Of a DNA stretch of 64,000 bases, positions 20,101 to 63,343 are shown one piece after another. Numbering within the stretch: position 1 is the stretch's first letter; every line of letters starts with the position of its first letter. The notes under the pieces are model-generated. The model saw nothing but the letters and a program-made list of their open reading frames with translations, ran no database searches and was not told where the DNA came from. The translations under genes and the position numbers were made by a program. The stretch lies in NCBI GenBank assembly GCA_002189035.1, contig NEEC01000014.1, forward strand, positions 744,001-808,000. Reading direction: 5' to 3'. The DNA is from Utricularia gibba (lineage: Eukaryota > Plantae > Magnoliophyta).

Positions 20101-23100
20101 AATTCATCTTTAGAATTAGATTGTTCTTCCAATGCTGCAGACAATTCTGATGTGCTTGAGTCAGTATGCAATGCTGGCAACACAAGCTCAGAGGATGGTG
20201 GAGGAAGCGACATAGAGGTAGAGGCAAAGCTTGATGAGTCAAAATCAGCTTTTACAGCAGGATGGTGGACTTCAAACGTAGCATTATTATCCACAGCAGA
20301 CGGCAATGAAGCATCATCAGGAGCTGCCACCATCCGCCTGGGATCATGACGGCGAGGATCCTGAATCATTTATAGCAAATTCCATAAAAGATTCAAAGAA
20401 AGCTAAAATTGGTGGGAATACAAGAAGAAAATACTTCAGAATAGCAACCTTACCCTTCGTGGATCACGTTTGAAATCAGCTGATACATTAGGTGTTGGGA
20501 CCTCGAGAGAAGGAAAGCTAGTTGAACGCGATGAAGATTCTGAAATAGGAGGGAAAGCTGCAGAGCCATTTGATGCAATGAATTGATCTTGATAACTAGG
20601 ATCACTATGGCGACTTAGTGATGAGTTAACGTACTTTACCATACCAGGTGCATTCTTTGGCAAGTGCCTCATATTTGTTATCACAATATCAGCAAGTAAA
20701 TCAGGATGTATGTTAGAAATCAAAATTTCCAGAGATTCAATTCCCCTTTCCCCTTCAGCAATTAGTGCACCAATCATAGCAATCATTTGTTCCACAGGGC
20801 TCACATCCACATCCAATAAAGGCTGCTCGGGGCTGACCCCATTAATATAATCCTTCTCATGATCAACTGTGACATTTGAGTGGTCCTGAGAGCCATTGCG
20901 AGGTCTTTTTGAAGTGCTTTCAAAAGTAGTAATTTGGCTTTCATTGTCTAATAGCAGCGCCCTTTTCTTACTCCCATCCCCAGAAAGATGCATTTGACTT
21001 GATAATGGACCTTCCTGATCACGGGTGGTCATGTTAAAAAAAAAAAAAAATTAAGACACGACATTGTAAAACACTGCCCACGATCACATAAAAACATAGG
21101 TAACCACCTTATTCACTTGTGGGTCCCGTACAGCACGGCCATTATTTTTCATCAGTTTCTCAACTTGTCGAACAGCATGATCAGCAGCATCTCCTGCATT
21201 CATTGCTCGCAACTCTTTAAGCAACCTATCTCTTGACTGCAAAAAGAAAAATTTATCACATTTTTCGTGGTTACTCAGGATATAAATTTGATCATACATC
21301 AATCTTAATATAACAAAAACACTAAAACTAGGCTTCAGAAGGGAAACAAACAAAATGGCACATAAGCCATGAGAAAAATATTACACACAAAGTAGAAAGC
21401 ACTGCCATCACAGCTGTGAAAATATACCTCCATCATGATAGGGTGTGTACACTTCAGAAACCCCAAAAATGCAGTTCTCATGGAATAATGAATACTGAAA
21501 GTATGGCATGCCCTTTTTCTCTCTACAGTTGGCCCGAAATTGAGGAATGCTGCAAGGATGGAGTTGTAATAGGCTGGTCTCTGCCGTGCTATAGATGCAA
21601 GACTGCAAGATACACACTGAATCATGATGTAGCTTATTAAAAAGCATTACCCTGTTATCATACAAATGGCAGGAAAACAAGAGAAGTATAGATGAAAAAA
21701 TATTCGCATAAAAATATTAACTATTCTCATGCAGAGTAACCAAAGTAGACAAACATTCCAATGGTAACACAAGAAATGCACCCAAAACTCGCTCATACAA
21801 CACAGCACTGGAATAACACACTCATGTGAATCCAACAACAAAATCTTTCTCACTTCCCCATGCTTCAAGAATCAGATAAGATTCTGAATTTATCAATCTC
21901 CAAGAGGAATCAAGAGAAACATTGTTTTGTCAACATGAGCCTCAATTTATCTTTTCCTTTCTACGAGAAAAGGTATTTGACTTGAGACTCATGCTAGAAT
22001 ATTGACATGGAAAAAGCGTATTAATGCAAGATACTGGAGAATAACAGCTGAAATCAGAAACACCAACTTCATAAAAATCAGTATGACCGCTACAAAAGAA
22101 GACAAAAAAATAGAGACAACCAACAGACTGTAAATTTTATAATCAAATTTGCAACTACTGGAAGGATGTGTACACAGACATTTCCAACGCATTCAGGAAG
22201 CTACAGTTTCATTTTCAGGATTCATATGGACTAGATTAATCATTTTCAGGAATCAGTTGGGCAGGATCTAGTGTTGGAGCCTAACCGACTCACCACCACA
22301 TTTTAAATAACACACATTCTTGAAAATAGCAGGATACTAAGTAACACGCATTGAACTCACAACTTAAAATTAAAAGCAAAAAAAACTTATTCTTTTACTT
22401 GGAGGCTTGAGAATCAATAGAATAAAAAGAATTAACTCTTCGTACACAAAACACAACCTTTCGCTACTCATATCTCATGTATGATTTCAATTTCCACAGC
22501 ATGAAAAGTAAATTGTGCAATCACAGATTCATACAAGTGGTTAAGTTGTCTTTTCAAATATTTCTTCCATTAGGGATACAACCTATTGCTTATAACACAG
22601 TAATTGCTATGTTTTTTGCAGTGGATATTCAAAATTGCAATTGTCAATAGCTTGCTCTGATGTAGGAACTGATAATACGAAGCTGGTGGCAAGGTCCCAA
22701 AACAATTTTAATTCTGAGCAAAAAGCCTAGTAACCCAAGAGCGAAGCACCCTCAAAATAAAAGAGAGCTCAGCTAAAAAATCATGATATGTTCGACAGCA
22801 CATAGTGAACCAATGGTACATAGTTACAGGGTTTCATCATTACACTAGTCATTTGTATGTATAGGTATTGTGCCTTTTTTAGCTCTCTCCAGACAAATTA
22901 CATGCGTATTTACCTAGTTTCCAATACATAAGACTTCTAGGACCAACAAATCCAATTTTACAAAACCCTTAATCTGCCATATCAACATCCAACGCATCCG
23001 ATAACCACCAATTCAGCAATTCCAGGCAACACTGTCACCTAAGCATCTAAAATCTGCAGGAGCTGCAACTTTGACAAAGACGACAGTGGAACAAGTACCC

Positions 23101-33885: not shown

Positions 33886-36077
33886 CTAGAGGTTTAGCAG
33901 CTCTGAGAAGAAGCTCTGGCGTGGAGATGGCTTTCCATGCCAAGCTGAGGGATGAATTGTGGAAGGTGATGAACCGTTCAGATAGGGAACGATGTGTTTC
34001 TTCATGTCGTCTTTCGAGATTCCGAGGTGGTTCCCAGCGACTGAGATGTACTTAACTCGACCGGCATCGTCCAGCTTCTTCAAGCCGATCCAGTCCTCTG
34101 TGTATAGCTTCGTCTTGATGCAGAAAGAAAATCAGGCATTCAGTCCTCAGTGTTCCCACATGATGAACATAAGAAAAGCCAGAATGATGCTTCATCCGGG
34201 GTGAAGGCATGGTTACCTGCTGTGGAGGAAGGACAGGGCTAAAGGCTCCATCCGGATAGTATCCAAACCAGGCCGTCTGCTTTGGAATGATCACAGTGTC
34301 ATGCTCGAACTGATCACAGGACGAATTCAACCCGTTACAATCGAGCAAACCGGAAGCAGCATAGAGTGAAAACCCGTTACATACCATGATGAGTACGAGG
34401 TTCTGCAAGGCAGAGAACCGTTCTTTGAAGGTAGCATTCCTCTCACCAGGAAGCTCATTGTTGAGCTTGGGAAGAAAGCGGCATTTTTTCTGGTAGTCCT
34501 CCATATCCTGTCAAGTAAAGAATACATACCCTTTAGTTTCAAAGTTTGAGAATCCCGCAGTGGCATTCAGCAGATTTTTAAAACAGGAAAACTAACATCT
34601 TCTTACATTGGGCAGTTTAAGGTAGCCGCTGGGAGCCAAGTGTTCCTGCAGTTTAAAGCAAGGAGCTGAACACAAACAAGCGCCATGCTGTTCATATAGT
34701 TGCTTAAACAAATCGGAGAAAAGAGGCATACTTGAACATAATCGGAATAGATTTCGGACTTCATGATAGCATCAGCTATAATGCATAGAATGCCGGACTG
34801 CGAAGAGAGGCAACGACCCAACAATGGTTGCCATGAATCATAATGTAAACCAAACAGCAAGGAGGGGGGAACCTAAGGCTAAAAGGATCACTTACTCCAC
34901 ACAGAGGAACGGAGGCAGTACCCGCATGAGGTCCCCCAAGCGAGATGAAATTTCTGACCTGTTATACATACCCCAGAATCAAGCCATATCCCCATTGCTG
35001 AACACATACAGAAAATGAAGAACTCACCGGTGGTCCACCATCACAGAATTCTACAACCCCTCGCCCAATCAGGTTTCCCTTTGTGAAAAACAATTAACAG
35101 TAGACATTGAGCTTTGATAACTTTAGGGGCTGATCCAAAATTGTGCAGAATGACTGCTATTGCAGCACTTCCACAAGACTAAATAATGTATAAAAACCAT
35201 AAGACATTTACAGCTTTAAAGCTTACCTGGGAGAGGCCAACAATATTGTATCCATCCTGGAGTTCCTTCATTTGCTTGACCTGAAGTTCAGTAAAAATTC
35301 GACATGTTATCAACTTTCGACTGAAACAATGCTCTACGTATTGAGAGACAAATTACTAACCTTCTTGCACACAATTTCAGTCTGCATTTGAAGCACCATG
35401 TCAAGGTTAGGCCACAAGCAGAAGGGGTAATGGGATAAACTTTGATCACAGATGAAGCATGCTTACCTGCTCTTCAAGAGGTTTAAACCAAGAATCCCAT
35501 CCCCCATCTCCAATTTCTCTAAAAATTTTGAACCCAAATCACTGAAATTAAACCTTAAACAATAGAAGCAACACATCCTACCAAAAGTTCCCTCACATAA
35601 CTACATCACGCAATTTCTTTGAAGAGAGTATGTAACTTGTAAGTGAACAAATCCAGGTTTTTAGTGAAACAGCAGAGCGATATCAAGCCAGGTGGTTGCA
35701 ATAACAAAACTGGAGAACAAGAAACATCATCAAGAAACTAACATGCAGTGCCCTTCAGAATTGGACCATTCGCTGAGCTCCTGAGTAAAAAGCGTCATTC
35801 CCCTATTAGAACACTGGTCTCCAATTCCTAAGACAGGGATAGCAAGCCGTCAAGGCAGTGGAACCACAAACAGCGAGAGGGGGAAACTAAAGCATGTACC
35901 ATGGAGTACAATGAAGGGCAAACCACGCGAGACTGGGATACACGCAAGGAAAGCGATGACCAGGCAACTGAAATTAATCGATGACAGAAAATGAGATCCG
36001 GGTGTTGCAAAAGACTCGGTTTTTCCGCCTTCCCTTCGTTTCCCAAGAACGTCAACGAGAATCCTGGGCATATTCAT
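33886..36077 (-). CDS. PPT1: Palmitoyl-protein thioesterase 1 (about 12 exons)
   Basis: LPFIVLHG|IGDQCSNRG, EIGDGGWDSW, GYNIVGLSQ|GNLIGRGVVEFCDGGPP|VRNFISLGGPHAGTASVP, EHLAPSGY, FLPKLNNE, FEHDTVIIPKQTAWFGYYP, LYTEDWIGLKKLDDAGRV, GNHL. Lipase-type GxSxG across a splice junction. Confidence 0.95.
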
Positions 36078-36839
36078 CCCGTTCCCTCCCTCTGGAGTAT
36101 TCTGCTAGACTCTCCTTCGCGTTGGCTAAGCACAAATATGATCACACAGCAAAACGCGGATCGAATATTGCTTCGATCCAAGAAACATATTAAATTACTA
36201 TACGGCTTTTTCTTATTTTACTTAAGAAAATTGTACAACATCCAGTATATATTATTACAAATCGGGAATTTCCAAAGATTAAATGGAATGAAAATTCTTT
36301 TTAAAAATTTACTCTTAAATTATTATTATTATTTCCCTAAGAAATATACTTATATACAAAATTTTGAAAACTATAACGAAAATTGATGAATAGTCGACAA
36401 TCCCTAGCCTCCCTCTAATATTGCCCATGCGCCGATCACGCCATGCATTCTTGCTTCTGCATTCTGAACTCTCAACATTGATCTTACATTTTTTTTCCCA
36501 AAATGCCCACAACTTCTATAAGAATCTCAACAACTATAACCTCATATCATAGTAAAAGAGTTACAATACATACAATTTCCTAAATGATGGCAACAGGCCT
36601 AAAGATTAATATGCAACTAGAGTTGTTGGTTCATTATAAGAATCTTGATCAAAATGAATGCAATTCAAACTTGAGTTGTTCATTCATCACAACAACCCAA
36701 TACTCAAGTTCACTAAACACCACCACCACCAGATATCACATGATTGAGACACTAGAGAACTATCAGCATCACAAGCACTGACATAAGTTTCATGATAGAA
36801 GAGTTAGATAACATCACTTAAACCAAGATGCAGCAAGCC

Positions 36840-39212
36840 TCAGGCTGTGGTTCCAGGATCTTGCTTCTTCTCAACCTTATAAGCAGACCACTGGTCATCA
36901 CTGATCGGCAGCATGGTTGACAACGAACATTCGGGTGTCACCAGGGTAGTATTTTGTGGAACAAGTATGGTGCGCGATGATGAGCCTGTGCTGGCTGGGG
37001 GTTGTATAACTAAAGGTTCAACTGATTTGGCCTCCCCCACTTCACCATGAACTGGGGCTGGATTGCTGGGCTGAAGAATTGCATGCGATGAACCTGGGAC
37101 ATCGGCATTAATGGCATTCACATTTTCAGCTGAAGTCTTGGCTCGTTTCGCCTGTAACTCTGTTTCTGTAGTGATGATTTTTCATAAGAAACAAAGCGTT
37201 CATCAAAAGTTCACATCATATTATAGTTAAAAGCTTTACTAGACAGACATCGTGTTGAATTCTCGTTTTCATACACCCCTTTACTGTTTATCAGGAACAA
37301 CAATACCTGGTTACAAAATTAATAATACTCAGAGACGGAAAAAGGAAAAATCTGGCATTGCTACACTTACCTTCATTATCAAAATCCGTTTGCTTTCTAG
37401 TTGACGCTCTCTCTTCAACCCTCAATGTTCCAACAATAGCAGATTGCTCTACAGAAGATGGTTTTGGCTGCGGTGTTTCAGGACAAACAGAAGATGGTAT
37501 TGATGACACCGCAGGCTGGGAGCCTATCAAGATTCAAATTTCAAGGGCCCTACGTCCCATGATACTATGTTGAAACATGACTAGAAGAGAGCTAGTAAAT
37601 ACTTGCTTTCATCAGCACTAAGATCACGTCTAACCAAATGTACGTACGGCCATCCTTTTCTCTTAAGCACAAAATTAAAAAATTCAGAAAACTGCGTACA
37701 AGAATGAAGGCATGCAAAATGAAAAATCATGTATAATAGTTTCTCACCATCAATAAGTGCATGATATGCAACTTTTGCAGCATTCATCTCAGCTTGCTTC
37801 TTAGTTTTAGCTTCTCCACCATGAAAGGAAAGTTCGCCAAGCTCCACTTGAGATACAAATGAAGGTTTGTGCGACAAACCGAAGGTGGTGGTTTTATATG
37901 ATGGATCATCTAAACCCCTTCTCAGAGCAAGTTCTTGAAGAAGGTTTTTATATGAAACATCATCCTAACATCATGCCAAAAAATATGATTTTTGTTGCTG
38001 ACAAACAGTAGATGACAATAATAATGTCACTATAAAGTTAACGTGCATTACTAACCCCTTGAACCACATCTAATGACATTGCTTCGCAGGCAGCCTTTGC
38101 AACTGCATGCTCAGCTTCCCTTAATGTAGTGAATGACTCCTGTGTCTCATACGATTGTCCATCTACAGAAACCTTCGATTTGAATCTTAGTGCATGACCA
38201 GGACCTTCAGTATTAGTATGATATACAGGAAGAGCAATAGCTTTTTTTTGCGCATACTGTTGCAGCAAATTTTTATAAATATGCAATTTTCCTGCAAGTC
38301 ATACAATAATCTTCTAAATACTGCAACAAAGCAGAAGTACCTGAGCATACTACCTGTAGAGGGCAGAAAATGAAGTACAATACCTTTCTGCACTTGTAAA
38401 GCATCCCCAGAAACAGTAGGCGATTGCACAATGTTTCCAAAATTCTGTTGTGCCATCACCACACTATTCAAATTACTCGTAGGAGACTCAGTCTTTGGAG
38501 CCAGAACTAAAAGCAAGAACCAAGTTATGGATTACATTTCCCATATCTCAAAAGATAAATTAAACTGCACATACACAGAACCTACTATAAATTGTTCGAC
38601 AAGATTACAAAAGGAACATAATGCATTCATGAAAGCCTTTATTTCAAATCGAACTGTAACTACATAAATTCAACTTGAAATCGCCTGACAAATCATAAAA
38701 AAATTTCCCGATGAGGACATGGCACACCTATAGTTTCTTGAAAAAGAGAAAAAAAATTAGATAATCTTAGATAGATAACCCAGGTTAAATATGGTCAACA
38801 TCCCTAAGTTACCTGGTGTGCGAAATGTGGGAATCGGAAGTTCCGAAGGTGAAGGTGAAATTGGGATAATCGGGCCCCCATCCGCGACTGGATACTGCGT
38901 GTTAGCCATATGATACGCCGCTTGAGGCACTTGATAGCCGGAGTAATTTACAGACTGCGTGGGGTAATTGACTGCGGAGGAGTTGGCAACCTGTGCCGAT
39001 AGAGAGGTGAGATGATAAAGTGCGATATGGGCAGCATCATTTTGAGCCTCCTTTGCAGATTTGTGATGGCCAGGGGTGAGGTACGTATTCCCATTCACGT
39101 TAACCGTCGCCGTGAAACGCGGCGCATGTTGCGGCCCATCCTTCAGAGTGTTGTACTCCGGAAATGGCCACCGCCATCGTTGGCATAATTCCTGAAGTTT
39201 ACTCTTGTACAT
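36840..39212 (-). CDS. DRB4: Double-stranded RNA-binding protein with three dsRBDs (DRB4-like)
   Basis: Three dsRBDs: MYKSKLQELCQ...GPQHAPRFTATVNV...KEAQNDAA; IYKNLLQQYAQK...GPGHALRFKSKV...REAEHAVA; SYKNLLQELA...HKPSFVSQVE...KTKKQAEMNAAKVAY. Disordered tail ending LPISDDQWSAY. Assignment to the DRB4 clade is inference. Confidence 0.85.
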
Positions 39213-39258
39213 TGCGGCACTATCGGAACTAGGGTTTCATCCGCAAGCTCTTCGAAGC

Positions 39259-40223
39259 TCTATCCAACGATTGTCTTCGTGGCTTGTAGTACCAAGAAAA
39301 GCTTCGGTTTCCACTAAACTGTCAGATCTTAAATGCCCATGAATACAGTCATCAAAATCAAACTTTGGAAGCGGATACGGTCTCGAAGCAGAGGAATCCT
39401 ACGAGGTCTCTTCACCAGCTAACTGCAAGTCTTGTCCTTCGAAATCATTCTCATGTAGTCCATTGGTATGTCCCTGAAATTCACACAAGTTCATTATGGA
39501 AGTTTGAAACCACTTCTATGATACATCAACACAGGTTCCATCTGGTTAGATAATCATAATACCGATGTGAAACCAAGCTAAGTGGTCAAATTATACAAAA
39601 ACCCTCCTCAACTAATCACATTGTTCATGACATCTCGAGTCAAAATTCCCCCATGCTGAAACGGACAACTTTGAAATTCTAGGAATACAGGAAGTGAATC
39701 AGGCGTTCTCCAACACTATCAGCTGCCATAGGTTCCAGAAACACCCCAAACACAACACCCACCACTAGAACACGAGAGAAATCATCAACTGCCTCAACCA
39801 GAAGCACCCCACAAAAAGGGTATCTCATGAACGTATCCATAGTGAAACAACAAAAAAATAAAAGAGGAAATGAAGAGTAGCAGAAGAAATGAGTGGAGAG
39901 ACGCTACCTCCATCCATCCGAAGCCGAGAAGATCACTAATGCGCTCTCAAATCAACAGCCACACAGTAGCAACACCTTCCTTCATAACCCTAGCGACTCC
40001 AATTCATGCTACACAAAACAAAAAGAAACACCTCCTTCCACCTCAATAAACCGAAATCCAAGCGCCCAAAACTCCAACCCAGAGAGCATCAACGACTGCT
40101 GCGAGAACGAGTGCGCGAGAAGCAAGCGTCAGGGAAAGAAGAAAAACCACTACACTTACCAAAATCAATGCACTTAAAAGGGCATCGGCATGTTTTGTTC
40201 GCGGGGGCAGTTCCGGCAAACAA
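39259..40223 (-). pseudogene. Partial direct duplicate of the SWO1 5' end (promoter, leader/intron, first 68 codons), disabled
   Basis: Collinear match to 61900-62948 in the same orientation. In the ~206 coding nt I count 14 substitutions and a 1-nt deletion; frameshift at codon 4 and AAG to TAG at codon 22 (39399-39401). Confidence 0.95.
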
Positions 40224-40836
40224 GGTTTATCAAAAGCGTCTAAGAAATAGAGTATATTATAAATTAATTGTATTATTTTTTGGGGGAAAATTATAATTTA
40301 TATAAAAAAATTATTCATTTATATAAGAATATTTGAATTTGATTTATTAAATAAGAACATTCGAAAACGCCCAGAGCCTGGTACTGATTCTTTGTTCACA
40401 CACTGCCTCTACACAATATATGCATGCATTGAAAGGAAGAAAATGAGCTGCATGGATTGCAAACACAGAACTGGATCTCCATTGATTTCAGAATGTTGCT
40501 GGCAACCATCCATTCACAAGGTTGAGCAAGGGATACATGCACCCAATCACATGACAATACTAGGGGAGGTTTCAGCTTCCAAAATTTGACAAAACAATCT
40601 CTCAAGCAACAACATATCTTGCATATCTATGTATGAGATTCAAATGAGTAATGACACTGTTGTGTGTAGTTCACACCAGCACCAAACTATTGGAATGGTA
40701 CTTGTCAATCCAGCTATGGGGGGCTGCTTGGCTCCCAGGTGGAAGAGCATAAGGCCACACTCAAACAGAACAACAGACGAGTACTAAAGAGATATACAGG
40801 TTGTATCTACAGATACTGAGTATTTGATCAACAGAT

Positions 40837-42076
40837 TCAGGCGACATCTTTTGCTACCTTCACGGGTTTGTCTTTCAAAAAAGCCACATCGCTGTTTGGG
40901 GTGATGAGGAGATGATGTTGGTCGAGATCCTCAACTTCACTCTCTTCAGAGCCAGATGAGGAGCCTGAGCAGCTTCCATCTTTTTTGAAGAAAGGGAATA
41001 TAAAGTTTAGGGTAAGGTATTGACCAGGATCAAAATAGGGGTTGTTCAACATCTCGAGAAAATTAAGGGGTACACACTTGTATCTATTTTCATGCTTATC
41101 AGTCGGACACATACAGCATGTTCATGTCATTTCACACCGAAGTTATAAATAATCAGAATACACGGCCCAATTTTAATCAAACAAAACCTGAGTAAATATG
41201 CAGCAGAAAAAAAAAAAGATGCTTACCTGAATACATATGATCTTCAGGAAGATGTGGCAGTCTCGTAGCCTGGAGGCTTTCAGGTAGAAGGCAGTTACAT
41301 AAAGAACCTGGATTCACAGCATATTGTAGGAATATCAGGGACATCATATATGAACGGGTTTTGGAAGGAAAACATATTATGAAGTATCGCAATGAACAGC
41401 AGAGGAACAAGACAAGGCAATGATAAACTAGGGAGCCAATTTTCCTTACCCAATCGAGCCAGGCGATTCACCCATCCAGGAATTGGTTTTCCAGTTAATC
41501 GCAGGCAAACATCTTCAGTGAAATGATTGCAATTTTTCGAAATCAGATGGTATGTATCGCCATGATATTCATTGGATAGATGTTCCATGAAGGTTCGAAC
41601 TTCAGAGTGGGACATGTCAATGCTACCCAAAAGAATAGAGCGCCTAAATTTGAAACCAGGGCAGTTTCTTGGTTCAACCTCAAACACTCCACTTGTTGGA
41701 TACTCATGAGCTCCAAAGCCATACTCCATTCCATGAACTACTCCCCAATATAATAAACCGTTTGACTAAGAGCATTTTCATAAGCAACACAAATTGTAAA
41801 CAGATTTCAGTGATACAAAAACATGGGATATTCTTTATCTGGACACCCATAATTATGATATTACTCTCGCAAATCTTGATGCATACAGAACAAAAGGACA
41901 TACTGCAGCATACCTTCAATACCAGAATGATAGATTCCAAGGCTGAACCAATAAAGGTAGTTATTCATCGGAGTAAGATCATAGACATTTAGGTAAAGCA
42001 TTCCACGAGTTTTGCCAGCAACCTCCTGATCCGCTGGAGAAGCCTCCGAGGTCGGGTGAATAGGTAACAATGGCAT
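40837..42076 (-). CDS. DeSI-like / PPPDE putative peptidase (4 exons)
   Basis: LYLNVYDLTPMNNYLYWFSLGIYHSGIE|VHGMEYGFGAHEYPTSGVFEVEPRNCPGF...YHLISKNCNHF...IPGWVNRLARLG|SLCNCLLP; catalytic His (YHSG) and Cys (NCNHF) present. Confidence 0.93.
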
Positions 42077-43298
42077 TTTTTTTCAAGCCCTTCTCCTCAC
42101 CATCAACTCAACGCTTCTGGGTGTGAAAAAAGTCTGTTTACCCACAAAGGCACAACAAAGCATCAAGTATCCTCTGTAATTCAAAAATCTAAACAAAAAA
42201 ACTGGGAAACTTCAATGCACTCAGATGAATTTCATACCACCACATGCACATTACGAATCCCAGGCGCATATGCTATACTACGTAACAGGAATCGACAGGA
42301 AGGAATTAGAAAGGAAAGAAAAGAAATCGAATGAGATAGCGATACAGCGATGAGAACGGAGAAACAAAATTCCTCTTGAAATCAATCTTTTATCTCAAAC
42401 CCAAAAGCGATGTTCACCTTGTGCTTCTCAAACCGGAATCGGCGTGGCGAAGGTTTTCCGTTCGTCGATTGCCGGCGTTTCTTCCACTTTCTCTCTCGAT
42501 TCTCCCACACTTTACCTTGATTTAGAAACATTCATTCTCATCTCTGTAAATGACAAAAAAAAAAAAAAACCATAGTCGCCATCTTACAAATCATACAATC
42601 GCTACATAAATTATATTTATACATACCGGCATACATGCATGCATGTAAAAAAAAAAAAAAAAAACACATACAGACATCACATCCATGCGTAAATTTACCA
42701 AAATACATTTATAAAATATTTTATAAATTCTATAAAATATCTGCATTTATTATTTTAAAATAATACTTTTGAAATAATTTTTTAAAAAAAAATAATAAAT
42801 TAATTGAGTTTCCATATATGTAATTCACATGTGTCCATTCCATCTCTAAAAACCCTAAAATTGTGGTAATAAACACAATTTATCTAATATTCTTTTTTAT
42901 TAATTACATAATAAACATTTATCTAATACAAATAATTTAAATATATACATACATATTTCTCTTGTAACATTCGAATATTTAAAATACAACACATTGTATC
43001 ATTTTTAGTCGCAATGCCACATGTAATTTTTAGACAAATATATTATCAAAATTACTATATAATTATACTATGATCATCTTCCTTTTATTTCTCATACACT
43101 AAGATAAAAAAATTAACATTAAATGTGACCATTTTTTCATACATATATTACATGATTGCCAAATTTCTAAATCGCCCCACCACATCCCTCTTGCAGCATT
43201 GAAAAGAAAGGAAACCATCTTCCAATTACAACAATTTTGCAGAGCTTCTACCCATCTCATGAAATGTATAAAATCCACATGAACCCAGAAGACCATTT

Positions 43299-46200
43299 TC
43301 AGTAAAATATGGAGTTACCGATTTGGTTGTTCATAGCAGCTGCGTAATGGTCATTGTAGTCCAGGAGATCCCACAGCCGAGACAGACCCAAGTCACTGCT
43401 CTTGAGTGACTTGAGATGAATTGACTGCAACTCCTCCAAATTTCTGATGAATGTTGCTTTGATTGAGTGCATCTGGAGGATGTCAGCTTGACAAATTCTG
43501 TCCACTTTCTCATCAAATGTGGCCTTGAGGATCCTGCCTGTCAGACATGAGTGATAGTCCACTGAGCACTGCAGGATGTTTTGGATAACCGCAGCAATAG
43601 TTCTTGTGTCATTGGACAAGAAGCATATTTGCAGTGATTCGATCAAGTAGTCCATGAGCCTTGACTCCAGATCGAACATATCTTCGACTTTGAACTGCAT
43701 AGACTGGAGAAATCTGTGCCAGGAAACCTGGGATAACTGCACTTGCACATACTGCAGCAATGTGGAAATAAAATGGTAAATCATGTGCCTGATTCCAGCG
43801 ATTAAGGATATTTGGCCTATGTCTCCTTCATGCTGCCTTGAACTAATACACTTGAATGAGGTCCATGCATCACTAAGCAAGAATATGGCTAGCTTCACTT
43901 GAATCAAGAAATTAAATATATCTGAGTATATGGCCAGAGCCGCAGGGGTTAGGATCATGGTGATTGGCCACTCTATTTGGTAGCCCAAGCCCAAGAACTT
44001 GAAGGTGTTGATTCCCATGGCACAAGCAGCGAAATCCTTGATGCTATTTTCTTTTAGAGACACATAGAGACGATCCTTGTTTGGATTTCCCTCACAAGAA
44101 GACCTTTGGATTGCTAATTCAAGGGCTCTTTGGACTTCGGGAATCCTTTTGTGGACATCATTGTCATGCCATTTATGGTGCTGGAGAGACATGATGAAGA
44201 GATCAGCCCAGTCTGCGTGTTCCATGAAATGAAAACTGCGGAGAGCTTGCAAATGCTCTTGCAGCTTGAACCCCTCAGTTAGCAACTTGATCATAAGCTT
44301 GCTTATATATTGATACTGAAGGGATATCTCATCCACCAATGAATTTTTTATCGCAAAATCTAGTGGCAAATCAACTACAGCAACCAACTTACGCTGGCAG
44401 CGGGGCACATTGTTTTTGACATTATGAGTGGATCTACCAAGCAAGCTTTCCCAAGAAGAGCCACCAGAAACTTTTTCCAGTGATGCATATTCTCCCTGAT
44501 TTTCATTCTCAGCCACAGAAGTTTTTACGGAGCATAACTTAGCATCATGGTCCTTGGTGAATTCACCATTGTCTTTTACAGTAGGGCAGCGCAATGTGTC
44601 ATCTGCAGAAGCTGGAAGTTCATTCATAGCTGAAGTGGGATCAGCATCTTTAGTTACAGCATTATCAGCTACTTTAAGCACAAAGGCCTTTACTGGATCA
44701 TTTACATTGCCGAAATCCGCAGACAGACCCACTGAACCTGTGTAGCAATTTACTGCTGGCAGCATCACCGAGGGGTTGAAAAAGTCGCTATACTTCAGTA
44801 TTCGGTTGGAACTGAAAACATCAGAATCATATCTCTGCTTCCAATTATTCAAACCAATTGCCTCCATGTTAGAGCATGGTAAATATTTATCATGATTTGC
44901 AGAGCTATTAAACTCGGTGTTCATCAAGCCAAAACTTCCTAAGGCTAACTCATATCCATTATCAGTCAGCCCCAAACACCTCTCATGCTTACTGCTTGTA
45001 AACCTGTTTCCAGTAGCTGGTGAGAACTCTTGGTCCATATCCACAACGTATGCTTCATCTAGAATTGGACCCATGCTGAACTCTGATTCAAATTTGATAT
45101 TTGACTTAAAAACTTCCAAAATCCTTGAATCATCACCTTGACGCTGAGTTTTTACTGAATTGTTAGACAAAATCAACGGAGAAAGCAGGTCTGATAAATA
45201 ACTTCCCTCAGCACCATGACTAACAAAATCCACGTTTGTGTTCACATTTGGGGCGTCAGTGCTCTCAGATGATGAGCCATCAGAGGATAAGTTCTCTTCA
45301 GCGAAAGAGTATTCATCAATAACGCTTGATGCCTCAGAATCAACAATACAGTTATGCCTGAATTAATTGAAAAAGAGATCGAGATCATTTAAAATAAATA
45401 CTGCTAAAGTAAAAATTTCAGCTATTTTTGGGATATCAAGCAACTACAAAAGAAATATATGGACAATGGTCTGCGGGATATAGGGTAAGAAAAACATATA
45501 ACTTACACCGACAGAATATTTCCTTCACATTGAGAAGTTGAGCTTCCACCAACTGCAGACAATGGCCCCTGATGAAGGTCCCGTTCATGATTGTTCAAAA
45601 TTCCTAGAGCAGCACTTCGCTGGCCCGCCTAAAAAACACATTTACATAGAAACATATTATGATATGCAAAAGTAAACCATAATGCTCCCAAGAGACCGAT
45701 AGCTTTCCAATTTAAGACAGTTTTTAGGGGAAAATTCTCAAGAGAGGAAAACAGTGAAACACAACGTACAAGTACTTTGAAGCTTCTATTATAGCATCAG
45801 TACATATACAAAAAAAAAAAAAAAAACACTGATCTGTATATTACCTGCTGATTTCTGAGTTCAAATTTATTTGTTACTTGTTCGATTTTTTCAAACATTT
45901 GTTCATAGTATCTGGTTCTCATATGCACCAATCTTTCAATGCATTCCTTGTCAAAAGTGAATGGGACTCTAAACCACGGATGTTTTGTGGTTAAGTCAAT
46001 TAAAGAGGGAGGATCTCTTCCTGGGCATCATATGAATCAACAATGTGAAACATTTCAAACAATTTCATTATCACTTGATGCTGCTGGCCGGTTCTAAGTA
46101 GCGGAAGTAGGCACTCTTCCAGAAAACAGGGAACGTCAACCTCATTCCGCACCTAGGACAAATTAAACAGAATTCATTGATCCCAAAGTGAAACAATGTA

Positions 46201-47599: not shown

Positions 47600-48322
47600 A
47601 TGAGTAAACCACCGGCTAACGGAGCAGGGCTTCCCCGGAAGCGCTTCTATCGCGCGCGGGCTCACAGCAATCCCTTGAGCGATTCCCATTTCCCAGTTCC
47701 CATTTCTCCCGCCGATTTCGACCACGCCCTACACTACCCCAATTTCCCCAACTCCAAGAAGATCGAATTCGCCGACGTCGGCTGCGGATTCGGCGGCCTC
47801 CTCATCTCCCTATCTCCCCTGTTCCCGGAAACTCTCATGGTCGGAATGGAGCTCCGCGACAAGGTTTCCGAATACGTCAAGGAACGAATCCTAGCGCTGA
47901 GGGCTTCCAATCCCCATCCCCATTACCAGAACATATCCGTGGTGCGCACCAATTCGATGAAGTACATCCCGAACTACTTCCAGAAGGGGCAGCTGAAGAA
48001 GATGTTCTTCCTCTTCCCGGACCCGCATTTCAAGGAGAAGAATCACCGGCGGAGGGTGATCAGCCCGTTCCTGTTGGACGAGTACGCATACGTTCTGGGG
48101 ATCGGCGGGGTGATCTACACCATCACGGACGTGGAGGAGCTCGGGGAGTGGATGAAGTCGTGCTTGGAAGAGCACCCACTGTTCCAAGCCGTCGATGAAG
48201 GAGAGCTCCGGGAAGACCCAGTCGTGGAGCTCTTGGCAACGGCGACGGAGGAAGGGCAGAAAGTTGCTAGAAACCAGGGTGAGACATTCAGAGCTGTTTA
48301 TAGAAGAATTTCTCTTCCTTGA
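47600..48322 (+). CDS. TRM8: tRNA (guanine-N7)-methyltransferase catalytic subunit, intronless
   Basis: LPRKRFYRARAHSNP, FADVGCGFGGLL, GMELR, RTNSMKYIPNYF, MFFLFPDPHFK, TEEGQKVARN. Intact 240-aa ORF. Confidence 0.97.
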   Translation: MSKPPANGAGLPRKRFYRARAHSNPLSDSHFPVPISPADFDHALHYPNFPNSKKIEFADVGCGFGGLLISLSPLFPETLMVGMELRDKVSEYVKERILALRASNPHPHYQNISVVRTNSMKYIPNYFQKGQLKKMFFLFPDPHFKEKNHRRRVISPFLLDEYAYVLGIGGVIYTITDVEELGEWMKSCLEEHPLFQAVDEGELREDPVVELLATATEEGQKVARNQGETFRAVYRRISLP

Positions 48323-52098: not shown

Positions 52099-54014
52099 AT
52101 GCTTCATTTTCGTTCTTCAAGTTCAGATTCCCAAGATTCTTCAATCTCAAGTATGGAAACCGATTCCCGTTCTGAAATTACGCCGAGGATGGCTATCGAT
52201 CGAACTCCGTCGGGGATGCTGCAAATCCGAAGACTCAGAGGATGGCGGTTAACTGAGGAACAGTTCAGGGGGTTCGTCTGGGTTGCTACGTTCATCGCGT
52301 ACGCACCGAGAAACCCCATGAACGTGGTGAAAAGCGTTCTCAATCCGGACCCCGATGGCGTCCCAATGGATTCAAGAAACGAGGCCACAGGATGGGCGCC
52401 GTTCAATGGGGAATACGGGAGTTTGAATTTGGGTTTCCTGGATATGGTGTTTCTTGTTTCCTATTCGGTGTCCGCGTACATCGCAGAGCTTTGGGACTAC
52501 CGATACAATCTTGGTTTATTTCTCACTTTGGGGATGATTGGGAGTGGATTTTCTATAGGATTGATTGGAGCGGGGTACTTCTTGAACATCCATTTTATCG
52601 AATTCTACGTTTTGATGCAAGTGGTTGCAGGGTTTTTTCAAGGAATCGGTGGCCCTGCCGCCGTTGCCGTCATGGAAAACTGGTTTGGAAGGGAACATAC
52701 AGGATCGATCATGAGAGTTTGGGATGCCCACGTTCTGCTCGGAAATATACTTGTCACTCCGCTTGCAACTAGCGTTTTAGAGCTTGGATGGGGATGGTGT
52801 TTTATCCTTATCGGCGCCGTCATCTTTGTCTTCGGGGTTTTAGTGTTTCTGTTCCTGCCACCTTTTCCGGACGGTATCCCGTTAACTTGGCAACCCCATT
52901 GGTCTCTGAGGAGGAAGAAGCTTTGCTTTCTGATGAATCAGAAGGAAGAAACGTGAATATAACACGGGCTATACTCCATAGAAGAAACGTGAATATAACA
53001 GGGACTATACTCCCTAGAAGAAACGTGAATATAACATGGTCAGAGCTCCGTAGAATTCCTGGACTCTTCACATTTGCAGCATCCGTCTTCTTCGCCAAGC
53101 TCGTCGTTTACACAATCATGTATTGGTTGCCGTTCTACCTCAGCCGGATCGGTAATTTTATGTGTACTGGTTTTTTTCTGTTCCATTCTGCCTTCTAACG
53201 ATATGTTTTTTCTGTTTCAGTTGTTGGGGGGAAGCAGTTGTCCGCGCAAATGGCTGGAAATCTATCGGTTCTGTACGACGCCGGCGGAGTGATCGGCGGG
53301 GCCTTCACCAGCTACATTTCCGACAGGTGGGGAGCCAGAGCAGTTACAGCATCAGCCTTCTCCTACATATCAATCCCATCAATGATTCTGTACCAAAGAT
53401 TCGGAACTGTATCTTACGCAATGAACAATGTCCTCTTGCTGCTCACTGGTCTGCTCGTGAACGGCCCGTACGCGCTGATCTCGACCACGGTGGCTCTGGA
53501 TCTCGCCAACCATGTCTTCCTGAGAGGCAACCCACGAGCCTCAGCGACGGTGACAGCAATCATGGATGTAACCGGGTCCATTGGGGCTGCTCTCGGCACT
53601 CTTCTGGCGGGGTATCTTTCTTCTACAGGATGGCGCTTCGTCTTCTACATGCTGGAATCCTGTGCGCTGATGTCAGCTCTGATTTTGAGCCCTTTGTGTG
53701 TCAATGAAGTCCGAATGCTCCTCCTCCGGCGACGCAATGCCCAAGCTGGTACCGGAAATCGACTTTCAGGGTCTGTTTCTATTAAGGGGCTGACCTGTTT
53801 GTTCTCTACTCGTGTTGCAGATCGACAAAGAAGTGACCCTCTTTCTGATGGGAGCGATGCTGCTCTGGATGGGATTGATGCTGCTGTGGATGGGAGTGAT
53901 GCAGCTGAAAGTGGAAGTGATGTTGCTGAATCTGGAAGTGATGCTGCTGTGGAGGAAGCAATGACAGTGCTTACTCTTGACGAAACACCCGGCGAGATCT
54001 GCATGGCGGAATGA
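52099..54014 (+). CDS. Glycerol-3-phosphate permease (G3Pp, MFS OPA/SLC37 family), divergent, with a -1 frameshift at 52878-52880
   Basis: GWAPFNG, LGFLDMVFL, WFG...WDAH..GNI, WGWCF, IPGLFTFAASVFFAKLVVYTIMYWLPFYLS, LYDAGGVIGG, GLLVNGPYALISTTVALDL, ATVTAIMDVTGSIGAA. Intron 53152-53220. Start could be 52099 or a downstream ATG. Confidence 0.88.
52945..53036 (+). repeat. Coding tandem repeat, 36-bp unit, about 2.6 copies
   Basis: GAAGAAACGTGAATATAAC starts at 52945, 52981 and 53017; encodes RNVNITRAILHR / RNVNITGTILPR / RNVNITW. Confidence 0.95.
53847..53951 (+). repeat. Coding tandem repeat, 21-bp unit, 5 copies
   Basis: Units at 53847, 53868, 53889, 53910 and 53931 encode DGSDAAL, DGIDAAV, DGSDAAE, SGSDVAE, SGSDAAV. 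Confidence 0.9.
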
Positions 54015-54603: not shown

Positions 54604-57600
54604 TTAGCGACCGCTGTTTCCTGATAAAGAAGCAGCAGCAGCAGCTACCATCAGGTTCAACACATCCATGCATGCGTTTTTAGCTAGCAATGGGATCTAA
54701 CATTACCTCTTGCTGTTGTAGTTTTGGTGGGAAGTTTGTCGTGTGAAGAGGACAGGGATTTCGAGATTATCAGTGAACTTTGCAACCCTTCCAGCAGCTG
54801 AAAGAGTCACAATGAAATGACATGTTGTTCAGTTACTGGGAAGTATGGCAGTCAGTAGCAAGGGTGAAAAGGAGCATTACCCTTGATGTTGGTTGGATTC
54901 GACGAACTGATCGACGGGGCTCAGATGCATCTGAGATTAGAGTTTCATCAGATTCTCTCTTCAGTGATCTTCCACTGGGAATTGGAACCTTTTTACGATT
55001 CAATGGTGGCAGAGCCTTTGATGAGAACACCATTGCATCTCCTGAATTTTCATCTTGATTAGAGTTGGACCCATGTTCCACAAGATGCTGCTCCCCCAGT
55101 TCACTCTCGGCACCACTTGCTGAGCCCTTTCCCACATGATCAGATACAGAATCATCGCACTCATCCGGTTTAGAAGCTGTCGAGTCATCTTTCCGCGGTA
55201 AAGTTCTACCAGTATTACTGCTTGCTTTAGCGGATCTGGCAGCCCTTGCTTTACCCTGGAAAGGTTGTTTCTCCTTCACCTCCACTTTTAAACTGGTTTC
55301 AGAACTTTGCGAGCTCCGTCCATGAGGTGCCAAGAACTTCGCCAATCTATCTGAATCACTGGAAAGTTTAGACTTCACTCCTGGTTCTGAGACATAATGC
55401 TTGCTCACTTCCATGAATTTTCTCTTCTTCCCAGGCTTCGGGACACCAAAGACAACTCTTGATCTTTCTTTCTCGAGACTGGACCTTGTTCCCCGGATGG
55501 CTTTGGGCTTATTTCCCTCTGCTTGTCTTCCAATGCTGAACTTTTTCTCATCGGCAGACAGTGGCAAAGTGGGTCGTTCTGTTCCATGAGCTTCTGCAGC
55601 ATCAGCATCACCGATCTGCTTACCTTTATCGGTTATTTCGCTTGCAACCTTTGCCCTCTTCTTAGCTGGTGTGTCCCCTGAAATGTCGAAAAAGGGAAGT
55701 CAAGGAATGAATGAAGCAAACCTCAAATCGCATACACCAAATCAGCAAGAAAAGAACCTTGAATGTAGTGTTGCTCCCCAGTCTTGGAACTTCGACCCAT
55801 CGAGTGCCATCCCAGTTCAAAGTTGGCCGTAAGTGCCACACTTTAACTAATGTGGTCTGTTCTTGATCTGCAAACAATACGAATGGTATTTCAAAGTTTG
55901 AAATGATCATATAATGATGCAGTACCAAAGAAGTATAAAAACATACCTGGGAACTTGATACGCATTGCGGATTCGTCCTTTTTATTCTTCTCTGAGATGA
56001 TGCCTTCACACCAGCTAAAAGCAACAGGAAACGCAAAAGAACTTGAATCAATTCAAAAAAAAAAAAAAAGAATAAACAGAATGTGTACTTGTGAATTACA
56101 GCACTGGGTTAGTATGAGATACATATAGCCTGTTTACGAACCGAAGAAAACATGAGAAGTCAGGTAGAATATTCGGATTTTTCTTACCAGTTGTCCATCC
56201 ACACATCAACTCTATCTCCTAGTGACCAGTTATAATCCCTGCTAGCATCTCTTGGCCTCTTCTTTGCTCTTTCATGAGGAACAGACGAGAGTGGGTGAGG
56301 GGTACGCACTCTTGGTGCATTATTGTCCTTGGGACACAGGGATACCCATTCCTTCAGCTGCTCAGAACCTATTGAGATAGCATCTAAAATTGGTTAAAAG
56401 GGGAACTGCTACTTCAGTCAATCATGCTAGAGAAGCTGACACAAGTTTCTTCATCATGTCTCAGAATACAGAAGTGATCATTATTAGCAATAAAACCAAA
56501 TACTTCAGCGACAGCACAGCACATTGCTTTCCCGGAATGCTCTGTTGACTTAACTAACTGAATCCAAGGATGCAGTGTTGTTTGGGAACCCGTTAGAGCA
56601 TCATTAATTCTCAAGATATTCAGAGCGATAAAAGTTTTGTTCAGGCTAGTTGTGCTTAACGAACTGAGATACCTTCTGTGGACTGTATGTCAGTGTAGCA
56701 AACAAGGACTTCCCCCTCCCTAAAGCCCAGTACAGTGGCTGAAAACCAGGCTTTCTTTGAATCAGTGCTATCCCTAAGGACCTGAATGCATGGATCATTG
56801 AGCAGAGAGCATCAATTGAGGATTAAATGTTAATGTCATAACGCAAAACAAAGCATTATTTCAGGCAAGGCAACAAAACAAACCTCAACACGTGCGCCCT
56901 CTTGTATGCCTGACGCACCAAGCGCATCTGATAGGGAATAAAAAAGCTCATCAGAATTTGAAAATATTAACTTCTTCAAATGTTATGTGGTCTGTGCACT
57001 AAAGTTCCAAGCTATTCAAAGAAAACATCCTCATGCGTACAGGAATTAATATCCCTAAACATGATGATCAACTCCTGTCTTGGTAGTTCATCTTGAATTG
57101 CAGGTATAATGATCAGTAAGTCAGGAATCCTTACCAGTTTCCTCGGTGCCCTTGTAATTTGGTTTTGAGACAGGATTCGATTCCAGCTGTGGGTCCTTCC
57201 AGTAATTATCAGGCCCAGCTTCCACCAGTTTCCTCGAAGACAAAAGGTTTGTCATAGCCACAATTTTTCCTGCATGTGAAACAGCCTCAGCAGCCAATTC
57301 TGCAGCCTTCACAATAGCATCAAGATTTTCTGCATGTCTCGTGGCAGCAGAAGCAGCCTCTATTCTTTTTCGTGCAGCCTCTCTGGCAGCAGGTATACCC
57401 AAAGTAGAATGGTTCAGACCATTAAAGATAGATGCAGTTGATGCACTAATTAAAGTATTTGTGGAGCTTGAAACCAAATTTGAATCATATACGGCGGTTT
57501 TGGCAGTTTGAGACATGATTAGTGCTTCTTCAAACATTTGCTTTTCATGTGCTGCTACATTTTCCGCAATCTTAGCAGCTGCAGCAGCTGCCTTGGCTAC

Positions 57601-60600: not shown

Positions 60601-62105
60601 CAAGATTGCATACCGTAGCTCAAATTCAAGGTGTCTTCGGTTGATGGTTGTTTCATGCTTTCTACCAAAACATTACAATCATGATCATGCCTCTCTCGAA
60701 TGGCATTGATATTTCTCAAATCTTGCTCAATATCCAACAGTGATTCATCTCCAGCGATGTCACCTATGATGGTGGGATTTTTGGATTTAATCTGACTTTC
60801 ATCATCATTGATATCCCTTTGACCATCCATCTTAATTGGAAATGTGGCAGCTTTGCATAACCCAGATGGCATGAGAGAAGAACGGTGAGCATCAAGAGAG
60901 GTGTTGATAGCATGAGAAATGTTTCCGTCAGTAAAGGAGCTCTTTTCTTCATCAGATAGTTTAACAACAGGATCTTGCATCAGATCAACGTCAGCGCAAA
61001 CTGTGATAGAGCCAGGCATACTGTTTGTAATTTCCATTACTTCTCCATCTTCTGCTGCACTAGGATCCTCAGAGACCTGATTAACCTCTGTAGCAGGAGA
61101 CAGACTCATACTTTCATATGAAGCATCACCAATAGTTTTAGTATCTATCGCAACATCCTTGCTCTGATCAATTTCCACTACAGATACTCCAGTAGCATCG
61201 TTAGATGAAGGTTCTCCACAAACAGAATCTGGCATTTCAACTTGAAACTCTCTTTCTGTGTCATCAACTTCGACACCCATAACCCTGTCTTCCATGGTGG
61301 ATTCTATTCTAGTAACGACTTCCTGAGATGGAAATTCATTGTTATCAATCAATTTGCCTTGAACCTGGAAATTTACGTTCACTGGATTAGAAACAGATTC
61401 ATTTTCCATGGCACGAGTCTCACCATGATCTCTGTCTGTTTTCAACGCCTCAATTGCAGAACTTTCAGTCACTGCCAGTAAATTACTCTCTTCAGCGACA
61501 ACAAGTGGGTCATCAGAAGAGCACTCAGAGAGCTGAGCTCCCAAAGTATCTTCCACGTGGTTGCCAACAATTCCCGAGTTCAGGATCGGTGTAGAAACAT
61601 TCCCTTCAACTTCAATAGGAGGTAATGAGGAATTTCCGCCACTAGAATCTCTATTTATATCATCTTTCATCAAAGGATTATCCATGTCTTCGGTGGAGGT
61701 ACCTTGTTCATTTAACGTATTCGATTCCTGCATCAAACTTTCAACTGGATCTGTTTCTTCTTGCACAACAGCCTTCAATAACATTTCGACAGATTCAGAC
61801 GATGTTGCTTCAGACCAGACATTGATACGACTAGGCAAAGAGCAAGATTCTGGTGCCCTGGAGCTGAACTCGATTCCATTACCTGGATGAGAAAAATCTT
61901 CTATCCAACGATTGTCTTCGTGGCTTGTAATACCAAGAAAAGCTTCGCTTTCCACTAAACTGTCAAATCTTAAATGCCCATGAAGACTGTCATCAAAATC
62001 AAACTTTGGAAGCGGATATGGTCTCAAAGCAGAGGAATCCTTGGAGCTCTCTTCACCAGCTAACTGAAAGTCCTGTCCTTCGAAGTCATTTTCATTGTAG
62101 TCCAT
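54604..62105 (-). CDS. SWO1: Agenet/Tudor-domain protein G2484-1 / SWOLLEN1-like, with a -1 frameshift at 58303-58306
   Basis: Diagnostic N-terminus MDYNENDFEGQ...LRPYPLPKFDFDDSLHGHLRFDSLVESEAFLGI...NVWSEATSSESVEMLLKAV; FQQPFTDLQQVQLRAQIIVYGSL|..APDEACMLSAF; AREAARKRIEAASAATRHAENLDAIVKAAELAAEAVS; VVFGVPKPGKKRKFMEVSKHYV; EPRRSVRRIQPTSR|LLEGLQSSLIISK; inferred last exon GNSGR*. Confidence 0.92.
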
Positions 62106-63343
62106 TGGTATGTCCCTGAAATTCGCACAAACTCATTATGGAAATTTGAAACCGCTGCTATGATACATCAACACAGGTTCCATCTGCTTAGATAATCATA
62201 ATACCGATGTGGGACCAAGCTAAGTTGTCAAATTACACAAAAACCTGCTCAACTAATCACATCTTCGATAACATGTCGAGCCAAAAATTCCCTATGCTGA
62301 AACAGACAACTTAGAAATTCTAGGAATACGGGAAGTGAATCAGGCGTTCCACACCAGTATTAGCTGCCATAGGTTCCAGAAACACCCCAAACACAACACC
62401 CACCAACACTAGAACACGAAAAAAATCATCAACAGCCTCGACCACAAGCACCGCACGAAAAGGGTATCTCATGAACGTATCCATAGTGAAACAACAAAAA
62501 ATAAAAGAGGAAATGAAGAGTACCAGAAGAAATGAGTGTAGAGACGCTACCTCCATCCATCCGAAGGCGAAAAGCTCACCTTTAATCCTCTCTCAAATCA
62601 ACAGCCACACAGCACCAACACCTTCCTTCATAACCCTAGCGACTCCAATTCTTGCTCCACAAAACCAAAAGAAACACCGCCTTCCACCTCAATAAACCAA
62701 AATCCAAGCCCCCAGAACTATGAACTCCAACCCAGAGAGCACTAACGACTTCTGCGAGAACGGGTGCCGCGCGCGAAGCTTGCGTCAGGGAAAGAAGAAA
62801 AACCACTACACTTCCCCAAAATCAATGCACTAAAAGGGACACATCGGCATCAGTGTTTATGTTTAGTTAATGGGGGCAGTCCTGGTAAACACAGAAGGAT
62901 TAACTTGTCCAATTCGAAATACTAGTGGGGGCAGTTCCGGTAAAACAAAAGATTAGCTTATTATTAGTTATTAGAATTAATAAAATATTTAGTAATTAAT
63001 TTACAGAGTTAATATATTGACTATTAATTTATAACCTAACTAAAAAAAAGAAAAATGAAACAAAGAAGACGGGGAGGGAACTTGACGGCGGGCGAGATGA
63101 GATGAAGCTGTTCGAGAGATGAAAAGAGGAGCAGGAAAAGGGAATTGAAAGAGAACCCATTTTGTTTGGTCTCAACAATATTGGACGCAAGTGAATCGAT
63201 CGATCTATCGATCTATAATGCCGGTAAGCACAATCCCTTTTGATGCGATGGCCGGATCCAAATGTATAGGATTCGATTGGTAGGGATTTTTGTATCACGA
63301 AAGATTTGAATTTGACTTGATGCAGTTTAGGAGCGGTGTGTTT

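Follow-up and report, generated by a model that had tools for sequence, protein, structure and literature searches.

Two genes on the minus strand of the window (the whole stretch of DNA that was analyzed, 64,000 nt long) are considered here: a DRB4-like gene with three dsRBDs and an SWO1-like gene with a probable Agenet domain. Part of the 5′ end of the SWO1-like gene occurs a second time, 22.6 kb away, just in front of the DRB4-like gene. The coordinates of these genes and of the features between them are given in Table 1.

Table 1. Features at the DRB4-like and SWO1-like loci (positions are those of the window)
Feature	Position	Strand	Remarks
DRB4-like coding region	36840..39212	-	484 codons, six coding exons, three dsRBDs
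DRB4-like coding exons	39212-38813, 38506-38384, 38291-38055, 37963-37747, 37522-37371, 37165-36840	-	From RNA splice joints
Native DRB4 upstream remnant	39213..39258	-	46 nt; telo-box AAACCCTA at 39237-39230
Copy A	39259..40222	-	Partial DNA-level duplicate: core promoter edge, leader exon, leader intron, decayed codons 1-68
Copied SWO1 exon 2 start, now 5′UTR	39259..39472	-	Old ATG at 39463
Copied leader intron	39473..39906	-	434 nt, removed by splicing at GT..AG sites; X1 and X3 have the joint 39472/39907
DRB4-like non-coding first exon	39907..40183	-	Wholly copied DNA; reaches at least 40183, a contig end and not a mapped start
AT-rich spacer	40223..40529	.	No X1/X3 RNA contig; not homologous to the SWO1 upstream region
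PPPDE/DeSI-type peptidase gene	40530..42135	-	Pfam PF05903; spliced, expressed; same strand, upstream of DRB4
Agenet-domain fragment, downstream exon of source gene	56659..56811	-	PF05641, E 2.5e-4
Copy B (source)	61900..62948	-	Functional 5′ end of SWO1-like gene

The exon chain of the DRB4-like gene, read from the RNA splice joints, starts at 39212 and runs through an intact 484 codons to a stop that ends at 36840; a poly(A) site lies near 36708 or 36660. Protein searches were run exon by exon, and three Pfam dsrm matches were obtained, in the exon ORFs 39212-38757, 38286-38038, and 37877-37581 (E 5.6e-14, 1.3e-13, and 3.9e-07 among the three matches). In Sesamum latifolium, a protein of 476 aa that is named DRB4 (P0021) is collinear with this chain, and a word search gave 69% identity at best for the first coding exon. 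Three-dsRBD proteins that begin with MYK are common, since most of the best 150 representatives have three matched stretches; in these 150, the query domain lies at residues 1 to 70. Among PDB entries, Arabidopsis DRB4 was the top match for the second (57.4 bits) and third (59.2 bits) dsRBDs of the window protein, with DRB2 and DRB3 close to it at 55 to 58 bits. The dsRBD1 and dsRBD2 of Arabidopsis DRB4 (PDB 2n3f/2n3g/2n3h) can be aligned over their full length with dsRBD2 and dsRBD3, respectively, in the window protein, and the two proteins have the motif EAKTKK.AEM.AAKVA in common. An additional N-terminal dsRBD distinguishes the window protein from Arabidopsis DRB4 and is also found in its orthologs in Sesamum, Rehmannia, and many plants outside the Brassicaceae; in the PDB search this extra domain scored best with DRB2. 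A PDB search with the C-terminal tail returned only spurious matches to repeat proteins. The collinear Lamiales proteins are named either DRB4 or “DRB1-like” in their sources. Taken together, these similarities indicate that the gene is probably of the DRB4 type. In Arabidopsis, DRB4 is a cofactor of DCL4 in the production of tasiRNAs and antiviral siRNAs.

Several other observations concern this gene and its orthologs. Alternative splicing was seen at the dsRBD2 exon, where use of the acceptor at 38162 instead of 38290/38291 drops about 128 nt and shifts the frame; a 64-nt joint (37303/37368) and an intron-retaining contig (37495-37776) were also found. All four RNA runs concerned, from three studies, show one more G behind 37544 than the assembly does, at a position within the 37523-37746 intron and covered by the intron-retaining contig; the probable cause is an error of 1 nt in the assembly or a difference fixed in the individual that was sequenced. 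The DRB4 orthologs of Castilleja, Orobanche, and Salvia divinorum (P0290, P0292, P0300, P0303, and P0306) carry the name “HLA class II histocompatibility antigen, DR beta 4 chain” at NCBI, a misannotation that stems from the shared symbol DRB4.

The gene from which the duplicate was taken has multiple exons and encodes a protein of about 2000 aa. One of its introns ends at 62115, its ATG lies at 62105, and its frame is open to 60573. The match of its downstream exon to PF05641 has a score of 21.9 bits, which is under the 27-bit cutoff; the domain is split here by an intron. On this sequence evidence, the product is probably an “SWO1-like” Agenet protein (SWO1 is described in PMC10442049).

Copy A, in front of the DRB4-like gene, is a direct, collinear duplicate of 61900-62891/62948 (copy B), and both are on the minus strand. 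A repeat search of the window resolved 39259-40164 and 61900-62820 into eight gap-free blocks in the same register, each 88 to 94% identical, at spacings of 22641 to 22656. In a BLAST search against the whole window, the region 36000-42000 gave a single match, that of 39259-40222 to 61900-62891 (88.3% over 995 columns with gaps; E = 0). Global alignment yielded 91.9% identity over 960 aligned bases, equivalent to a K2P distance of 0.086, with 92.4% in the leader exon, 91.6% in the leader intron, and 93.2% in the old coding part. Divergence is thus about uniform across the three segments, and no conserved element stands out. The original prediction of a same-orientation copy 22.6 kb away is confirmed by all of these comparisons, and its estimate of about 93% identity for the coding part was right.

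We found no homology in the flanks beyond either end of the two copies. At the distal end, the duplicate can be aligned to 62891 or to 62948, an ambiguity that arises because the source carries an internal direct repeat of about 55 nt, of which copy A has a single unit. The repeat unit in the SWO1-like promoter is a GTTT(T)ACC(G/A)GNACTGCCCCC-type motif, which is present twice, about 55 nt apart, in the source (62872-62946; starts at 62946 and 62891) and once in the duplicate, at 40204-40222. The difference reflects either a small tandem duplication in the source that came after the copying or the loss of a unit from copy A.

The copied SWO1 frame has lost 1 nt after codon 3 and then runs into a TAG at 39401-39399. 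Because this copied coding part is dead, the copying must have gone from the source at 61.9 kb to the copy at 39.3 kb. The source frame is open from 62105 to 60573, which places the breakpoint at 61900 beyond codon 68, within a long coding exon. The intron was copied together with exon sequence on either side of it; the event therefore took place at the DNA level, and retroposition is ruled out. Transposon-mediated capture was considered and rejected, as neither terminal inverted repeats nor a target-site duplication is present at the bounds of the copy. We also rejected a larger segmental duplication, given that the flanks are nonhomologous on both sides and nothing else of the 36- to 42-kb region is repeated in the window.

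Transcription of the locus was assessed with contigs drawn from a set of nine runs of one organism, produced in three studies; the contigs were placed on 36400-42300 (5901 letters) at 96% likeness. Runs X1 and X3 are from one study, and run X5 is from a second study of a genotype that is about 2% divergent. The material is RNA, as indicated by 11 joints that are all GT..AG on the minus strand and by a poly(A) loose end at 36708. Contigs of this kind show neither transcript starts nor abundance, and their depth is a weak guide.

In both X1 and X3, a contig of 876 nt joins 39999-39907 (93 nt) to 39472-38813 and then to 38506-38384. The first joint skips 39473-39906 (434 nt; CT..AC on the plus strand, GT..AG on the minus strand), and the second skips 306 nt, between 38813 and 38506. 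The piece at 39472-38813 spans both the junction at 39259 and the DRB ATG (39212), so that copied leader and DRB4-like coding sequence are joined in one spliced, chimeric mRNA. All placed X1 and X3 contigs are at least 99% alike to the window, and their identity to copy A is 99% or more. Within 39907-39999 alone, at least eight substitutions and a 3-nt indel separate copy A from copy B; the two differ too much to cross-map at 96%, and we therefore assign the 876-nt contigs to copy A. A further X1 contig (39970-40183) extends the leader outward. In X5, a contig of 507 nt (38813-39319) spans the junction at 39259 and retains the copy A base at 39289, a contig on 39907-40000 ends in 13 loose letters with which the next exon begins, joined at the same donor, and a low-depth contig lies on the copy A intron. 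A separate SWO1 contig in X5 cross-maps at the junction and, from 39259 on, continues with SWO1 sequence.

The prediction that DRB transcripts would splice through the copied intron is thus borne out by the 876-nt contigs. That they would also begin within the copy agrees with the outermost contig end, 40183, which lies inside it; the start itself is not a position that contigs can fix. With regard to the two junctions to be verified, RNA contigs of two studies cross the proximal one (39259), and none of the placed contigs crosses the distal one (40222).

The source, too, contains the splice donor used in copy A (GAG/GTAGCG, at 39907), and it has in addition an AAAG/GTGAGC donor about 30 nt upstream; a 3-nt deletion removed the latter from the copy. 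Judging from these sites, the donor used in copy A may differ from that of SWO1 itself. A search for an RNA gene in the copied intron gave no Rfam match (36 to 64 kb), and the fold of the intron is not unusual (z = -0.2).

The mature DRB leader is at least 537 nt long and contains 11 upstream ATGs (uATGs), each followed by a short ORF, whereas the modeled leader of the source has only three. Among the 11 is the old SWO1 ATG (39463), which has a strong context (CCAATGG) and opens a uORF of 14 codons. A fusion protein was also considered, as the deletion has brought the old SWO1 frame into phase with the DRB ATG; it was rejected because this frame is closed by the TAG at 39401-39399 and by a TGA at 39239-39237. 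The number of uATGs suggests that the leader lowers translation of DRB4 from the long mRNA.

The outermost contig end (40183) is about 39 nt inside the upstream edge of the copy, and the source promoter content upstream of it amounts to up to ~100 nt. No TATA box was found in the copied DNA upstream of 40183. What was captured is a core promoter/start region, a leader exon, and a leader intron and not a whole promoter; with only 39 nt of the copy upstream of the outermost contig end, most of the upstream control DNA is not derived from SWO1. Most of the captured sequence is downstream of the start, and the copied leader exon bears a TAGGGTT motif at 39992. In plants, leader introns and downstream promoter elements, as well as telo-boxes in 5′ regions, can carry information on expression level downstream of the start. 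The original prediction held that the DRB gene had been “rewired” onto the cis-regulatory region of SWO1. The structure that it described is confirmed; the regulatory part is plausible and partly supported, with the qualification that the captured piece falls short of a whole promoter.

Between the copy and the ATG at 39212, 46 nt of native sequence remain (47 nt had been reported), and the telo-box that had been noticed in this short piece is present. A AAACCCTA-like element is likewise found 25 to 45 nt before the ATG in all three of the other Lamiales DRB4 loci that we compared (L001, L002, and L003). On the other side of the copy, the distance to the PPPDE/DeSI-type gene is about 300 nt, as measured to the 3′ ends of RNA contigs at 40530-40570, and not the ~170 bp first proposed. 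No X1 or X3 contig covers 40184-40530, although a hole in contig cover proves little.

Farther upstream, between the PPPDE gene and a tRNA (guanine-N7)-methyltransferase (TRMB) ORF, is a long ORF that includes the C-terminal domain of a gamma-tubulin complex component (43299-45245, minus strand; PF04130, E 3.5e-51). The TRMB ORF (47600-48322, plus strand) holds the full Pfam Methyltransf_4 domain in one uninterrupted reading frame of 240 aa; its best match is 84% identical (Andrographis), with many eudicots at 76 to 82%, and it may be an intronless, possibly retroposed, copy. At 53828-53953 (plus strand), five tandem 21-nt units encode a G-S-D-A-A-type repeat at the C-terminal end of an MFS transporter ORF.

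We found no SWO1-like DNA or peptide upstream of DRB4 at L001 (281 nt searched), L002 from Sesamum latifolium (8 kb), or L003 from Rehmannia glutinosa (8 kb). The absence of the insert from these three loci implies that it is derived, having arisen somewhere on the lineage of the window, which fits the earlier suggestion that it is lineage specific. The three loci come from distant relatives, and their neighboring genes are not syntenic with the window. All Lamiales DRB4 orthologs are about equally distant from the window protein (50 to 57% identity), and the best matches of the window genes are from Andrographis, Sesamum, Rehmannia, and Henckelia, all Lamiales. No synteny with Sesamum or Rehmannia was detected beyond DRB4 itself. 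At L002 and L003, DRB4 is followed by a convergent MIF4G/MA3 gene; neither this gene nor the methionine synthase upstream of the Sesamum DRB4 was found in the window, which indicates that the window DRB4 is in a different genomic neighborhood.

The insert is older than the split, of about 2%, between the assembly and the X5 genotype. At a typical plant substitution rate, the K2P distance of 0.086 would correspond, as a rough figure, to an age on the order of a few million years.

We conclude that the borrowed SWO1-like 5′ end probably serves as the front of the DRB4-like transcription unit, with initiation from the copied start region, and we put the probability of this explanation at roughly three in four. 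In this explanation, a partial duplication at the DNA level took ~0.96 kb from the 5′ end of the Agenet gene to a site 22.6 kb off on the same strand, so that the copy came to lie in front of an intact three-dsRBD gene of the DRB4 type, 46 nt before its start codon. Transcripts that reach at least 40183 use the copied leader exon and lose the 434-nt leader intron; past it they contain the decayed SWO1 coding fragment, then the native remnant of 46 nt, and then the DRB4 ORF. Initiation would be driven by the copied core promoter/start region, aided by elements in the leader and intron, and DRB4 would thereby gain some SWO1-like transcriptional behavior. The long leader, including the 14-codon uORF at the old SWO1 ATG, would lower the translation of DRB4.

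Other explanations differ in where productive transcription begins. There may be two classes of transcripts, a long isoform with the uORF-laden leader (possibly prone to NMD) and a productive mRNA that starts at a native site near the telo-box (39213-39260), and the capture would then amount mainly to noise in regulation or to a damper. With 11 uATGs in at least 537 nt, the leader is a poor template, the AAACCCTA-type element before the ATG has been kept both here and at the three other Lamiales DRB4 loci, and internal starts are invisible to contigs. However, the only assembled X1/X3 RNA over 39213-39472 is continuous with the spliced leader, and since the modeled leader of the source also has uATGs, these alone need not block use; we regard two classes as unlikely. 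It is less probable still that the copy was exonized without promoter capture, that is, that it provides splice sites and a leader to transcripts that start in the AT-rich spacer (40223-40529) or that come from PPPDE read-through. The spacer has TATA-like motifs at 40304 and 40325, the PPPDE gene is on the same strand with its end about 300 to 350 nt off, and just 39 nt of the copy are upstream of the outermost contig end. Against this, X1 and X3 have no contig over 40184-40530, and the contig depth of the leader exon is 23 to 30, compared to 8 to 13 for the PPPDE gene, weak guide though this depth is.

That the copy was simply misplaced before the DRB gene during assembly is hardly credible. 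The lack of a placed contig across 40222 speaks for such an artifact, but RNA contigs of two studies cross the proximal junction, the two copies differ by 8% and by indels, and leader and intron sequence specific to copy A was recovered in independent runs.

A bolder proposal is that the capture was an adaptive rewiring, in which SWO1-type start and intron control of DRB4 is combined with translational throttling through the inherited SWO1 ATG as a uORF and with a loop of siRNA cross talk with SWO1. We consider this very doubtful. If it were true, the DRB4 and SWO1 mRNAs, which share ~500 nt of 92%-identical sense sequence, could each be hit by secondary siRNAs directed against the other, and a silencing cofactor and a chromatin reader would be coupled in a feedback loop. 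Apart from any adaptive role, the locus is a clean case from nature, backed by transcripts, in which one can see how a gene in an essential pathway may have its front end replaced by a short intrachromosomal duplication while the protein stays untouched. The parts of DRB4 that have been replaced are the start region, the first exon, the leader intron, and most of the 5′UTR. Donor and recipient make a ready comparison for the expression information that resides in plant leader exons and introns, and the locus allows study of how a dosage-relevant cofactor of RNA silencing tolerates a leader that is new to it and rich in uORFs. A TAGGGTT-bearing leader exon and a leader intron make up most of the captured module, and elements of these kinds can carry information on expression level downstream of the start.

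Partial gene duplicates that are recruited into chimeric transcription units form a known class (reviewed in PMC3449122; for fusion genes in Oryza, see PMC9199173). The present case resembles them in that a 5′ fragment was copied with its intron at the DNA level, exon-intron structure and regulation were altered, and the unselected coding part is decaying. It differs in that the recipient is an intact resident gene instead of a new ORF and in that the chimera is confined to noncoding parts (5′ exon, intron, and UTR). The case also resembles PEP1 of Arabis alpina, in which a tandem partial copy supplies a second promoter and first exon, giving two overlapping transcripts (PMC3527215). There, too, a duplicated promoter/first-exon module is spliced onto downstream exons to produce full-length transcripts; the PEP1 module, however, comes from the same gene, whereas that of DRB4 comes from an unrelated gene 22.6 kb off and replaces or precedes the native start region. 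The DRB4 case is accordingly one more member of a known category of mechanism, a partial duplication recruited as 5′ exon and promoter, and not a new category.
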